Assembly (NCBI GenBank): GCA_964035545.1
Contig: OZ037773.1
Span: forward strand, 10,135,751-10,199,750
Direction of reading: 5' to 3'
Length of the DNA: 64,000 nt
Source of the DNA: Bugula neritina
Lineage: Eukaryota > Animalia > Bryozoa
Made by a program: the position numbers and the translations under genes. The notes below the pieces were generated by a model that saw nothing but the letters and a program-made list of their open reading frames with translations, had not been told where the DNA came from and did no database searches. Position 1 is the stretch's first letter. Each line of letters begins with the position of its first letter. Shown here one piece after another: positions 1-62,552 of the stretch.

Positions 1-693
1 CAGAGAAGATACAGATCCTGTGAGACTAAACCTTCTGGCGGATATGGAAAAGACATCAACAGATGTGTTGGAAGTAACTATAGTAGACGAATGTGTAACA
101 TTCAATGCTGCCAAGGTGAGCTCTTGAAACTTTTTGTGCAATTCACTTATAAAAGTCTGTAGTAGAGAGAATGTTTATTAAAAGTTTTATCATTTTATAT
201 TTGGGAGCCTATTTAATACCAAGTTGTTCATTAAAGTAATGTTATATCATAGGTTGCACTAAACTCTTGACTTAAAGGTAAATAAATTTTTGGTCAAGTA
301 TCATTTTAAAATTTTGACGACTGTAAAATTTATCTAAAAATAGTTATCAACCGGCAATTGAAAGATGAATACGATTTAACAATATAATAAATAACAATAA
401 ACATAATATATAACGTAATGCAATGTGATAAGTCTCATGATAATAATATACTTGAACATCCTTGTCGCTGTGTGAAGAGAATAAAAATTATTTGAACTGC
501 TGTAGTTGATGGAGTGTGGAGTGACTGGTCTAACTGGGTGAGTAGGAAGGAAGTAGTTTATAAGCGGATGAGGACAAGATACTGTAGATATGAAAGTCCT
601 CACTGCCGAGGGAAACCCTGTGTTGGTGCTGACCAACAGACTCAAAGTGGCACTGGCCGTATTGAAGATTATCGAGGACCAGGCAAGAAGTAA
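1..693 (+). CDS. Family A secreted TSR (thrombospondin type-1) protein, copy A1; 5' part outside window; exons <1..115, 506..693
   Basis: Exon 1..115 reads QRRYRSCETKPSGGYGKDINRCVGSNYSRRMCNIQCCQ, then GTGAG donor. After the TGTAG acceptor: VDGVWSDWSNWVSRKEVVYKRMRTRYCRYESPHCRGKPCVGADQQTQSGTGRIEDYRGPGKK*. Phase-1 intron; WxxWxxW and RxRxC TSR motifs. Confidence 0.88.
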
Positions 694-1409
694 TCTTCCA
701 TGCTATGGTGGCAAGCAACTGAACGAAGAGAAATTCTATAGAATTAAAATTAGTTTGTTTTGATAACAAGCCCTTTCTATGTCACTATATGAAACTTTAT
801 TGCATAATTTGTTTACTTTTTATGTTATGCTAGACATTTCTCATCAATAAAAAAAATGGCTTATACTGCTAGTGAATTCGTCTATGACCTATTTGTTAAA
901 GGTCAGCTAAGTATAAACTCACATCCTATTCACCAACAGTTATAATAGCTGTCTCCACATGCTGACATATTGTCTAGGAACATTATATAGTCTGCACTTT
1001 GAAATACATGCAAATGCACTCAGAAAATCATAACTGCACTGCAAGTCAGTAAGAACTTGTTCTCTTTCCAAACTGTGAAAGTTTTCATATCTCAAACACA
1101 TAAAAGTCCAGCTCGACCATCAGTTTCCTTGTCCTCCAAACGTCATGATTAGTTATTTGTACAGTAATCAAGCAGCAAATATCCTCCAAAGATGTGCCAA
1201 CTTTCTAAATCACCATATGAACATAAATTACTTACAAGAGTGAGAAATATTACACTTTGTTGAAAAAGTTTCTGCAAGTTCTACAAATTTGATTTTGTTT
1301 ATTATAGGTGTGTGAGTGTATGTAAAGGCAAAAGCAAGCAGTTTACTATACTATTCAGTACGGCTACCCAAGTTGATAATGCTTTTAGCTAAAAAGTGTT
1401 TAACAAAAG

Positions 1410-1586
1410 ATATATATATATATATATATATATATATATATATATATATATATATATATATATATATATATATATATATATATATATATATATATATATA
1501 TATATATATATATATATATATATATATATATATATATATATATATATATATATATATATATATATATATATATATATATATATATA
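1410..1586. repeat. (TA)n microsatellite
   Basis: Uninterrupted TA dinucleotide run; source of the YIYI ORFs in the track. Confidence 0.98.
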
Positions 1587-60007: not shown

Positions 60008-60014
60008 TATAAAA
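60008..60014 (+). promoter_or_regulatory. TATA box of the Gly-His-Ser-Pro repeat gene
   Basis: TATAAAA 66 nt upstream of ATGG/GTAAGT at 60074. Confidence 0.62.
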
Positions 60015-60073
60015 AGGTGTGAAATCAAGACAAAAGTACTATTGTTTAGAAAGCTGTCACCATAGATGCAAAG

Positions 60074-62552
60074 ATGGGTAAGTCGTTGTATTTTATTCAT
60101 CAACACTCTGCTAAGCAGAAGTAAATTCTTTGAAACTCATTTCTAAAATCACCTGCTATTCTGAAAGATCGTATATAATAAATACTTATGAATGTAAACT
60201 CACATGCCTCTGCAAAGCAAAGTTGATTAACTTCCGTTCATCAAAATGAGTTATAAGATAAGTGTCTACTTGATGAGCTTGCACTTTGATTTGTTTAATC
60301 TTTTTAAATTTATCTAATAAATTGCCAAAAAGTGTAGATATCATATGGCTTGTAAAAAGTGAGTTTATCTTGCTCTTCATATCTATTTCTACTATTTTTG
60401 ATTAACCAAAACATTAGGCTTATAGTTTTTTAGCCTAACACAAATAAAACAACTTGTTACTGGTATACATGTTCATTATAAATTGGCTGTTTTATGTTTT
60501 AGACAAAAGAAGTTGTGTGATCCTGGTTCTAATATTAGGTAAGTCAAGAAACTACTTTCAACTATAATAATAAAAGACATATTTTTGTACAATTATCTTT
60601 TGTAAAATCCATTTATAGTTCTGGCTATGCGTGCTGTTGTATACCTTTAGTCCTGGCTATATTTTATGTTCTACTAGGATTGGCTGTTGCTAATCAGCAG
60701 CTTTTCAGAAACAAAAGAAGGACCTATGGTGGCAGACGAAGAGGAAGTGACCGAAGCGATGACCAAAGTTTCGGCACTATAATTTTAATATGTAAGTTTA
60801 ATTTGTTGATACTTGAATGTGTTTACCCAATGAAACATGATATAGAAGTAAAACATATAAAAGTTGATTAACATAATTAACAATCAAATCACTTTTTACA
60901 ACACAGAATTTATGGTACTTTTAGCACATGGCGGTCCTGGAAGACATGGTCAGTCAGCTGCTGCTCCAGGTGGACATGGTAGCCCCGCCCAATCTCCAAG
61001 TGGACATGGTAGCCCTGCCCACTCACCAAGTGGTCATGGTAGCCCCGCCCACTCACCAAGTGGACATGGTAGCCCTGCCCAGTCACCAAGCGGACATGGT
61101 AGCCCCGCCCATTCACCAAGTAGACATGGTAGCCCCACCCATTCACCAAGTGGACATGGTAGCCCTGCCCACTCACCAAGTGGTCATGGTAGCCCCGCCC
61201 ACTTACCAAGTGGACATGGTAGCCCTGCCCAGTCACCAAGCGGACATGGTAGCCCCGCCCATTCACCAAGTGGACATGGTAGCCCCGCCCATTCACCAAG
61301 TGGACATGGTAGCCCTGCCCATTCACCAAGTGGACATGGTAGCCCTGCCCATTCACCAAGTGGTCATGGTAGTCCCGCCCACTCACCAAGTGGACATGGT
61401 AGCCCTGCCCAGTCACCAAGCGGACATGGTAGCCCTGCCCATTCACCAAGTGGACATGGTAGCCCCGCCCATTCACCAAGTGGACATGGTAGCCCTGCCC
61501 ATTCACCAAGTGGACATGGTAGCCCTGCCCACTCACCAAGTGGTCATGGTAGTCCCGCCCACTCACCAAGTGGACATGGTAGCCCTGCCCAGTCACCAAG
61601 CGGACATGGTAGCCCCGCCCATTCACCAAGTGGACATGGTAGCCCCGCCCATTCACCAAGTAGACATGGTAGCCCTGCCCACTCACCAAGTGGTCATGGT
61701 AGCCCTGCCCACTCACCAAGTGGACATGGTAGCCCCGCTCACTCACCAAGTGGACACAGAGCACCATCTCATTCGCCAAGTGGTCACGGATCACATGGAG
61801 GTCATGGTAAACCATCCCATTCACCAAGTGGTCACGGAGCACCATCTCATTCACCAAGTGGTCACGGATCACATGGAGGTCATGGTAAACCATCTCATTC
61901 ACCAAGTGGTCACGGAGCACCCTCTCATTCACCAAGTGGTCATGGAGCACCAAGAGGACATGGAGCACCATCTCATTCACCAAGTGGACACGGAGCACCA
62001 TCTCATTCACCAAGTGGACACGGATCACCCTCTCATTCACCAAGTGGGCATAGAGCACCAAGAGGTCACGGAGCACCCTCTCATTCACCAAGTGGTCACG
62101 GATCACATGGAGGTCATGGTAAACCATCTCATTCACCAAGTGGACACGGAGCACCATCTCATTCACCAAGTGGTCACGGAGCCCCATCTCATTCACCAAG
62201 TGGACACGGAGCCCCATCTCATTCACCAAGTGGACACGGAGCACCCTCTCATTCACCAAGTGGTCACGGAGCCCCATCTCATTTACCAAGTGGACACGGA
62301 GCACCCTCTCATTCACCAAGTGGACACGGAGCACCCTCTCATTCACCAAGTGGTCACGGAGCCCCATCTCATTCACCAAGTGGACACGGAGCACCATCTC
62401 ATTCACCAAGTGGTCACAGATCACATGGAGGTCATGGTAGTCCATCTCATTCACCAAATGGGCATAGAGCACCGCATGGTCATGTTTCCAGACCTCACCG
62501 TAGATACTATGGTCCAAGAAGCAAAGGCCACAGGTCTACTGGACGATACTAA
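60074..62552 (+). CDS. Secreted Gly/His/Ser/Pro decapeptide-repeat protein, ~593 aa; exons 60074..60077, 60503..60538, 60678..60791 (donor could be at 60767), 60925..62552
   Basis: MDKRSCVILVLILGLAVA signal peptide, QQLFRNKR furin-type site, (GHGSPAHSPS)26, then GHGAPSHSPS-type units, ending HVSRPHRRYYGPRSKGHRSTGRY*. Variation among repeat units is mostly synonymous in this frame; introns are phase 1. Confidence 0.88.
60972..62460 (+). repeat. Coding 30-bp tandem array: 26 GHGSPAHSPS units (60972..61751), then GHGAPSHSPS units with 18-bp inserts
   Basis: Strict 30-bp periodicity; Gln-variant units recur at 61212, 61392 and 61572 (180-bp higher-order repeat). Confidence 0.97.

Follow-up and report, generated by a model that had tools for sequence, protein, structure and literature searches.

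In the secretory-cassette families, such as the preprodermaseptins of frogs and the conotoxin superfamilies, a conserved signal or prepro exon is combined with a hypervariable mature part. Here we describe a gene cluster of the bryozoan Bugula neritina that can be compared with such families. It was analysed in a stretch of 64,000 nt, in the following referred to as the window (assembly GCA_964035545.1, contig OZ037773.1 or C9:10135751-10199750 of the 216-Mb assembly), which is AT-rich animal DNA with 31% G+C. Twelve genes or pseudogenes of the window (A1 to A6, W, B1 to B3, G11 and G12) begin with the same rare structure, in which the coding part of the first exon consists of ATGG only, a phase-1 intron interrupts codon 2, and a second phase-1 intron follows after a short hydrophobic exon of mostly 42 nt. 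The window is probably, though by no means certainly, the downstream end of a lineage-specific tandem family of about 0.4 Mb that descends from one secreted-protein ancestor and whose products likely serve in cuticle or attachment. The structural and evolutionary part of this explanation is demonstrated at the level of sequence, and the functional part is inferred.

With the secretory cassettes, the locus would share the principle of one inherited 5' module with diverged mature regions, and it shares tandem duplication and rapid turnover, but in Bugula the signal exon itself has diverged, so that what remains of it is the position, the length and the phase together with a loose M-D-x-K/R-hydrophobic pattern, and the mature parts change by gain or loss of whole exons and by repeat expansion rather than by point hypermutation. 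The vertebrate SCPP cluster, which serves enamel, milk and saliva and includes the histatins, likewise consists of tandem low-complexity secreted genes from one ancestor with a small early signal exon and a single intron phase. However, the SCPP introns are in phase 0, exon 1 is non-coding and the signal peptide is encoded in exon 2, whereas here the phase is 1 and the ATGG is located in exon 1; there is no sequence relationship, and the likeness is one of analogy only. In case of proteins with thrombospondin type 1 repeats (TSRs), such as properdin, thrombospondin and the spondins, which are phase 1-1 proteins of Patthy's exon-shuffling class, the similarity lies in the fact that each TSR is encoded by one symmetric phase-1 exon. 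Compared to these classical TSR proteins, the Bugula proteins are tiny (150-225 aa) and combine only one or two TSRs with low-complexity parts rich in Tyr and His, their second TSR (TSR2) has lost cysteines and fails in Pfam, and the genes form a tandem cluster that is specific for the species group. It is textbook knowledge that TSR modules, as well as introns close to the cleavage sites of signal peptides, are in phase 1 (PMC1626468), and an early intron within the signal peptide is known from Drosophila cuticle-protein genes, where it precedes codon 5 and is in phase 0 (Nielsen and Wernersson 2006, PMC1626468). As in Bugula, this is a family-specific intron few codons after the ATG in genes for secreted structural proteins that are often clustered, but the Bugula intron is in phase 1 inside codon 2 and is followed by a second phase-1 intron 42 nt later. 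With regard to the products, the mussel foot proteins, the Nereis jaw protein Nvjp-1 and the squid beak HBPs have to be considered, which are Tyr/His-rich proteins of marine biomaterials. The predicted Bugula proteins resemble them in being basic and rich in Tyr, His, Gly and Pro, in carrying short tandem peptide repeats and in having a signal peptide. No homology to these proteins was found, and to our knowledge the TSR domain is absent from the mussel foot, Nvjp-1 and HBP families.

An earlier note on this DNA had listed twelve ATGG|GT starts, and all twelve are present at the positions it gave, eight on the forward and four on the reverse strand (15156, 18146, 25787, 35394). The extended pattern ATGGGTRAG has exactly twelve matches within the window, which are identical with the twelve gene starts; 0.65 matches are expected, and none of 100 shuffled sequences reached twelve. 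Downstream of each ATGG site, we searched for an exon that is bounded by AG and GT, open in phase 1, divisible by three and hydrophobic, and at every site a single open, in-phase hydrophobic exon with a length that is a multiple of three was found 160-430 nt further on, preceded by a Y-rich acceptor ending in AG and mostly followed by the donor GTAAGT. At control ATGGGTR sites, taken from 40 kb downstream of the cluster and from 40 kb of contig C1, no comparable hydrophobic exon was present. The exon has 42 nt in nine genes, 36 or better 45 nt in A1, 33 nt in A6, 36 nt in G12 and 48 nt in W. The note had termed it a signal-peptide exon of 36-48 nt, which is correct for its presence in 12 of 12 cases but has to be adjusted in two respects, as the range is 33-48 nt because of A6, and as the exon encodes the n- and h-regions only, cleavage being predicted to occur at the beginning of exon 3. 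The 4-nt first exon of the note should not exist as such in the RNA. As 10 of 11 subfamilies have a TATA-type box 58-84 nt before the ATG, ATGG should rather be the end of a first exon of about 35-60 nt. A purine is found at position -3 in 25 of 27 genes, and an upstream in-frame ATG is lacking in 26 of 27.

This start is rare in the genome. In the 216 Mb, ATGGGTRAGT has 765 matches, compared to 614 for a reversed-pattern control and about 610 expected from base composition, which leaves an excess of about 150 sites. Ten matches lie in the window and ten more in the 100 kb upstream of it, i.e. 20 per 164 kb, and there is none in the 40 kb downstream. The first 100 listed matches, which cover 30.8 Mb of C1, have chance density and include no comparable cluster. 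A triple of ATGGGTAAGT on C1 (19.73-19.76 Mb) was considered as a candidate second cluster and rejected, as it is a repeated element without a convincing signal exon. The window itself contains a control in form of a carboxylesterase/cholinesterase-type gene (52511-57060, reverse strand; Pfam COesterase, E 1.7e-54), which is multi-exon and secreted, and which has an ordinary first coding exon that contains the complete signal peptide. Because of the few excess sites and the ordinary start of this gene, the possibility that ATGG starts with phase-1 introns are the genome-wide norm for secreted proteins, which the note had named as its refutation, can be rejected, as far as this is testable without annotation.

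By chaining phase-1 exons, complete models were predicted for eleven genes and the Trp-peptide gene W, and all 41 modelled introns are in phase 1 with canonical GT...AG borders, just as the note had stated for every intron it resolved. Families A and B follow a common five-exon plan of ATGG, signal exon, linker, TSR1 (180-183 nt) and terminal TSR2, whereby the linker exon is short, rich in Tyr, His, Arg, Gly and Pro, and has the putative site of cleavage (..LTEG|Y.., ..VISA|S..) at its beginning. The TSR1 exons of A1, B1 and G11 match Pfam TSP_1 (PF00090) with 34-40 bits at a gathering cut-off of 21.6. Their translations contain WxxW, CSxTCG (as CSVTCGGG) and CNTQCC, with six Cys in about 55 residues; the first two are C-mannosylation and O-fucosylation motifs, respectively. 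The TSR1 exons of A, B and G11 are homologous, with 53-66% amino acid identity. TSR2 is cysteine-poor and has no Pfam match. A profile of nine TSR2 exons matched 2498 proteins, the best of which are multi-TSP_1 proteins, but this search ranks by summed score and thus favours large multi-TSR proteins; no close small relatives were found among the top-ranked proteins. For an AlphaFold model of TSR2 (mean predicted local confidence, pLDDT, 67), the top Foldseek matches are about 30 TSR domains, among them those of properdin, BAI1 and TSP-1, albeit weak with E values of at least 0.07.

Homologous TSR1 exons together with identical intron positions in all TSR groups make common descent of the whole gene the simple reading. 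The note had emphasized widely differing products, which is overstated, as a homologous TSR exon is present in ten of the twelve genes, and most of the locus is an ordinary diverged tandem family rather than a set of unrelated proteins. The 5' modules form nucleotide-similarity groups, and their exon-2 peptides share the pattern M-(D/A/G/V)-x-(K/R)-hydrophobic...L-G-L.. Exon 2 of family B, of G11 and of the upstream genes U62/U68 has a common nucleotide core (..CTYGGMCT..). In the upstream genes U22 and U27, 11 of the 14 residues encoded by exon 2 are the same as in G11, and so is the beginning of exon 3, from which it follows that genes with arrays but no TSR originate within the family. For G12 and W, no alignment to other members is possible, and what they have in common with them is the rare start, the phase, the location and the distance of the TATA box. 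Eight subfamilies including G12, whose last exons are quite different, end with Tyr-stop, mostly as ..TAC TAA/TAG (window 31270-31278, 39120-39128, 44747-44755 and 62544-62552; upstream U22, U27, U33, U62 and U95), and family A ends instead with Gly-Lys-Lys, an amidation-type end. Most simply, the TSR-less members, i.e. the GHSP polymer, the Trp peptide and the YHQTTKG arrays, would be derived members of the family, and three independent origins of the rare start in one cluster are very unlikely.

The chassis is inherited, as had been proposed, since dispersed copies on contigs C3 and C5 as well as a second Bugula assembly retain it. Two genes with the same start are found on contig VXIV02002366.1 of the NCBI assembly of B. 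neritina (GCA_010799875.2), and their annotated starts are the ATGG, followed by a 42-nt exon. Matches between this contig and the genome analysed here are mostly exonic, with about 82% identity over one gene including introns. U95 and its NCBI ortholog have the same five exons, which align over 504 nt without a single gap, at 94-96% identity and with the frame preserved. By contrast, the alignment of the four introns contains 170 gap columns and reaches only 80-91% identity, and in the 175-nt 5' flank the identity amounts to 95%. The coding sequences differ by 18 synonymous and 8 nonsynonymous codon changes. The window thus stems from a bugulid that is close to the NCBI assembly but not the same, and with introns that differ by about 15-20%, the two assemblies probably represent two bugulid species or separate members of the B. 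neritina species complex. Coding function is further indicated by the GHSP array of G12, in which, among 26 repeat units, the variability is 0.158 at codon position 3 and only 0.015 and 0.004 at positions 1 and 2. In the phase-1 frame, the array shows 36 synonymous and 10 nonsynonymous changes, whereas in the other two frames nearly all changes would be nonsynonymous. Paralogs with saturated introns retain their frames, phases and splice sites.

Exon shuffling by means of symmetric phase-1 exons, which the note had named as a possibility, is borne out by the fact that whole phase-1 exons have been gained and lost between paralogs. A1 and A3 are 91-97% identical only in their TSR exons and a few flanking bases (4791-5018 and 5344-5520 in A1, 10816-11046 and 11463-11639 in A3) and unrelated elsewhere, and A1 is 75-80% identical to A6 and to the upstream gene U88 across introns and the 5' flank, a mosaic that points to exon-limited gene conversion or recombination between members. 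A3/A4 and B2/B3 are near-identical pairs. The ancestral gene probably had a TATA promoter, a first exon with about 40 nt of 5' untranslated region (5'UTR) and ATGG, a phase-1 intron and a 42-nt exon for the n- and h-regions, followed by a Tyr/His/Arg/Pro/Gly-rich linker with the cleavage site, a TSR exon of 180-186 nt and a cysteine-poor, TSR-like terminal exon. As the internal exons are symmetric (phase 1-1), exons can be lost, gained or swapped without a break of the frame. Tandem and inverted duplication, the gain of an extra His/Lys exon and the loss of TSR2 or of both TSRs have diversified the family, terminal exons have turned into Tyr/His arrays (YxxH, YHQTTKG, HHGPSHYQP, GHGSPAHSPS), and exon-limited gene conversion and pseudogene decay have caused further change.

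The arrangement of the window begins with the 3' part of a family A gene, U99 (1..693, forward; end of TSR1 at about 1-110, terminal TSR2 at 502-693), which begins outside the window, with the ATGG and the 42-nt signal exon located 0.9 kb further upstream. A1 (3816..5541, forward) is intact and encodes about 150 aa, with ATGG at 3816-3819, a Tyr/Arg linker at 4379-4414, the Pfam-supported TSR1 at 4835-5014 and TSR2 at 5354-5541, ending ..PGKK stop. Its signal exon has 36 nt (3990-4025) or, more likely, 45 nt (3981-4025) via an upstream ttttag acceptor, which results in M-D-S-K as in its relatives. A2 (7423..8519, forward; 7423-7426, 7703-7744, 7907-7969 and TSR1 at 8340-8519) is probably truncated, as no TSR2 exon was found downstream. 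A3 (10065..11663, forward) is intact and encodes 162 aa (10065-10068; 10389-10430; Gly/Tyr/His linker 10617-10685; TSR1 10860-11042; TSR2 11473-11663), and A4 (13447..15156, reverse; 15156-15153, 14833-14792, 14605-14537, 14362-14180, 13628-13447) is an inverted near-copy of it, the 5' halves being 94-100% identical. Between the two, a degenerate TSR2-like open reading frame (ORF) at 12660-12836 on the reverse strand is probably a relic exon. The pseudogene A5 (16617..18146, reverse; 18146-18143, 17803-17762, 17576-17505, 17326-17144, 16807-16617) has an in-frame TGA at 17198-17196 within TSR1, and in the pseudogene A6 (20039..21280, forward; 20039-20042, 20242-20274 with 33 nt, 20616-20654, TSR1 from 21092) the TSR1 is disrupted by a stop and a frame change. 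The roster of the note therefore stands with regard to the twelve starts but includes these two pseudogenes and A2 without TSR2.

The gene W for the Trp-periodic peptide (24027..25787, reverse) consists of ATGG at 25787-25784, the 48-nt signal exon at 25555-25508 and a Pro/Thr/Trp/Tyr/His-rich terminal exon of 161 nt at 24187-24027, which gives a precursor of 70 aa; the last acceptor is weak and the model is predicted. In family B, B1 (29691..31278, forward) encodes 150 aa (29691-29694; 29990-30031; Tyr/His/Pro linker 30439-30489; Pfam-supported TSR1 30614-30793; TSR2 31103-31278, ending ..PHY stop), and B2 (33723..35394, reverse; 35394-35391, 35097-35056, 34561-34472, 34349-34170, 33898-33723) and B3 (37456..39128, forward; 37456-37459, 37755-37796, 38289-38378, 38501-38680, 38953-39128) encode 163 aa each. 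Two decayed G11-like TSR1 exons, at 41319-41495 and 41985-42140 on the forward strand, both with in-frame stops, precede G11 (42962..44755, forward; 42962-42965, 43127-43168, 43377-43502, 43956-44141, 44436-44755). This gene encodes 225 aa, with Asn/His/Tyr repeats in exon 3, the Pfam-supported TSR1-type exon 4, and about ten Y-x-x-H octapeptides in the last exon, which ends ..SSY stop. G12 (60074..62552, forward; 60074-60077, 60503-60538, 60651-60791, 60925-62552) encodes up to 602 aa. Its 141-nt exon 3 comprises a hydrophobic stretch and RNKRR and RRR sites, and its 1.6-kb exon 4 contains about 50 decapeptides of the GHGSPAHSPS type and ends ..GRY stop. The 36-nt exon 2 of G12 may be optional, as exon 3 alone encodes a good predicted signal peptide. 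Long (TA)n microsatellites are found at 1390-1600, 24780-25300 (within the W intron) and 40850-41020.

Beyond the window, whole-genome searches with TSR1 and TSR2 exons showed that almost every relative is located within 9.80-10.18 Mb of C9, with single copies on C3 and C5 that retain ATGG and the 42-nt exon. A cluster total of about 30 genes is an estimate from such exon matches. In the 100 kb upstream there are at least 11 further genes with the ATGG|GT start and a signal exon of mostly 42 nt (30 nt in U17). U86 and U88 are A-type genes with an additional 48-nt His/Lys-rich phase-1 exon, U62 and U68 form a subfamily that starts M-D-C-R-L-L-I-F-L-G-L.. and in which one member stops right after TSR1, and U95 represents a subfamily that starts M-D-Q-K-I-L-V-L-L-G-L.. 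In the six-exon gene U33, TSR2 is internal and followed by an HHGPSHYQP array, and U22 and U27 have no TSR, their last exon being a 0.4-0.8-kb array of the YHQTTKG type. U17 (L002:7609-8595, about 118 kb before the window) has ATGG|GT, a 30-nt hydrophobic exon and then a Cys-rich exon with the spacing of CS-alpha/beta defensins (C..CxxxC..C..CxC) and an RRAKR site. It has no Pfam match; among PDB sequences, the top match is a CS-alpha/beta peptide of 37 aa from a venom with E 0.009, and defensins and scorpion toxins follow with E 0.3-2. About 127 kb upstream of the window lies a gene with two CBM14 (peritrophin-A) chitin-binding domains (L001:7275-8669, reverse), and matches to family exons continue upstream beyond it. 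Between this gene and the window there are three C-type-lectin-like ORFs on the reverse strand (L005:1223-1573, L005:8943-9236, L006:2907-3236) with the pattern C..WTxA...C...G..L, for which no Pfam match at E <= 0.01 was obtained. At the other side, 30-36 kb downstream of the window, there are tandem LRAT/H-rev107-type acyltransferase-like genes (L019:9272-10000, L020:5316-6260), and the ATGG cluster stops before them.

What could be the function of these proteins? The predicted mature products are basic, with isoelectric points (pI) of 8.9-12, and contain 8-18% Tyr and up to 13% Arg; His reaches 12-18% in G11, U33 and G12, and acidic residues are nearly absent outside family A. U22 and U27 have 17-18% Tyr, and G11 and U33 11%, all with tandem repeats and a pI of 9.6-10.6. 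Mature G12 consists of 20% Gly, 18% His, 26% Ser and 17% Pro, and the Gly and His content of the jaw protein Nvjp-1 is higher than that. Look-alikes of the GHSP protein in the ESM Atlas were uninformative (best score 0.78). The products would be basic, Tyr/His-rich extracellular proteins which bind glycans by their TSRs, and most likely they become part of the chitinous cuticle or of secretions for attachment, in which Tyr, possibly in form of 3,4-dihydroxyphenylalanine (DOPA), and His could cross-link or bind metal. Composition and the CBM14 neighbour fit such a role in a material (cuticle or adhesive), but the cationic His-rich composition and the defensin-like U17 fit one in defence equally well; we regard the material role as the more likely of the two, albeit unproven. 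One may go further and regard the TATA/5'UTR-ATGG/42-nt module as a reusable secretory front end to which, by way of the phase-1 junction, mature exons that are new or unrelated have repeatedly been joined in bugulids (GHSP, Trp, Tyr/His arrays and perhaps the defensin), the cluster thus being a generator of extracellular-material proteins that holds cuticle or adhesive proteins; this is a tentative idea, and we regard it as possible but rather doubtful.

Several observations weigh against the view of a single-origin family for cuticle or attachment. A blastn comparison between the 5' modules of different groups (E <= 1e-3) gave no match, so common descent of the chassis in case of G12, W and U17 is argued from rare structure and location instead of alignment, and no shared promoter motifs beyond TATA were found above random controls. 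Three to four of the twelve genes are pseudogenes or truncated. The codon-position test gave no signal for the eight units of the G11 array, wherefore the frame of the last G11 exon is given by the splice phase alone. In the only public sequencing run that matches 37380-44800, contigs are continuous over introns and have no joints (37380-43379), which identifies it as DNA. Finally, nothing ties the products to cuticle or adhesive, and the defensin-like U17 resides in the cluster with the same start. According to a rival explanation, the same family would encode effectors of surface defence or symbiont management, namely cationic, His/Tyr-rich antimicrobial or metal-sequestering proteins with TSRs for pattern recognition, subject to a microbe-driven birth-and-death. 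TSR proteins do act in complement, as in case of properdin, and in cnidarian symbiont recognition; the best matches of the TSR2 model are properdin TSRs, even though with weak E values, and U17, the nearby C-type-lectin-like ORFs, the very basic pI, the His-rich linkers, the amidation-type Gly-Lys-Lys end of family A and the rapid turnover with pseudogenes and gene conversion would all fit. However, Tyr- or His-rich polymers of 160-600 aa, such as the YHQTTKG and GHGSPAHSPS arrays, are closer to structural or adhesive proteins than to antimicrobial peptides, and a chitin-binding gene is a neighbour. We consider the defence explanation rather unlikely, although it deserves attention.

With respect to origin, the missing nucleotide similarity among 5' module groups could also mean that the chassis is inherited by descent only in the TSR genes, and that the GHSP, Trp and defensin-like genes captured their 5' end or converged on it. 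Their exon-2 lengths of 36, 48 and 30 nt deviate from 42 nt, exon 3 of G12 by itself encodes a full signal peptide, and the A1/A3 mosaic demonstrates that members recombine. Nevertheless, the small excess of ATGG|GTRAG sites, about 150 in 216 Mb, makes three independent origins hardly credible, the derivation of TSR-less array genes from members is directly seen in U22 and U27, G12 has the Tyr-stop end, and even if a 5' end had been captured, this would count as exon shuffling based on one chassis. This explanation is thus quite improbable. Even further from likely, to a degree that we hardly reckon with it, is the idea that much of the locus is nonfunctional and consists of decaying duplicates whose exons are retained only through recent duplication. 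Stops in A5, A6 and the two relic TSR exons, the absence of TSR2 in A2, the near-identity of A3/A4 and B2/B3, and the lack of RNA support, the public run being DNA, could be taken in its favour, but diverged subfamilies with 40-60% amino acid identity retain open frames, splice sites, phases and TATA boxes, the exons of the inter-assembly pair are free of indels and show a synonymous excess, and the GHSP array has the third-position signature of a coding sequence. A tandem family from one secreted-protein ancestor, with products for cuticle or attachment, hence remains the preferred explanation.

As the note had foreseen, annotation based on ORFs largely misses this locus, as public protein sets contain it only as fragments of 62-101 aa. 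In NCBI and UniRef, a TSR1-containing ORF finds B. neritina proteins with 74-97% identity that bear the names 'Hmcn1', 'HMCN1' or 'hypothetical' and are without exception fragments of 78-101 aa, and a family A query finds a single fragment of 62 aa. Word-based protein searches with long ORFs and the region returned Bugula fragments only, and no full-length or transcript-derived protein. In the literature, searches for Bugula together with thrombospondin, adhesive, DOPA or cuticle yielded nothing on the family, and bryozoan cuticle or adhesive proteins were not described in the literature searched; a fouling-omics review of 2023 lists glue-protein studies for barnacles and none for bryozoans (PMC10342002).

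The general kind of system is already known, as we regard this as a tandem secretory-cassette family that evolves by exon shuffling. Particular is the combination of two phase-1 introns, the first within codon 2 and the next after another 42 nt, with a strict single phase across about 30 genes and an exon-level remodelling into Tyr/His polymers. The cluster is an unusually clean natural case of exon shuffling under way, in which entire symmetric exons distinguish paralogs that are separated by only a few kb, and its rare start structure can be used as a lineage marker. It also provides a candidate list of about 30 small secreted Tyr/His-rich proteins, which now appear in protein sets as 'hemicentin' fragments of 60-100 aa. 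Bugula-type bryozoans are leading fouling organisms, and if the 5' module indeed is a reusable secretory front end, the cluster would hold the cuticle or adhesive proteins of a major fouling animal.

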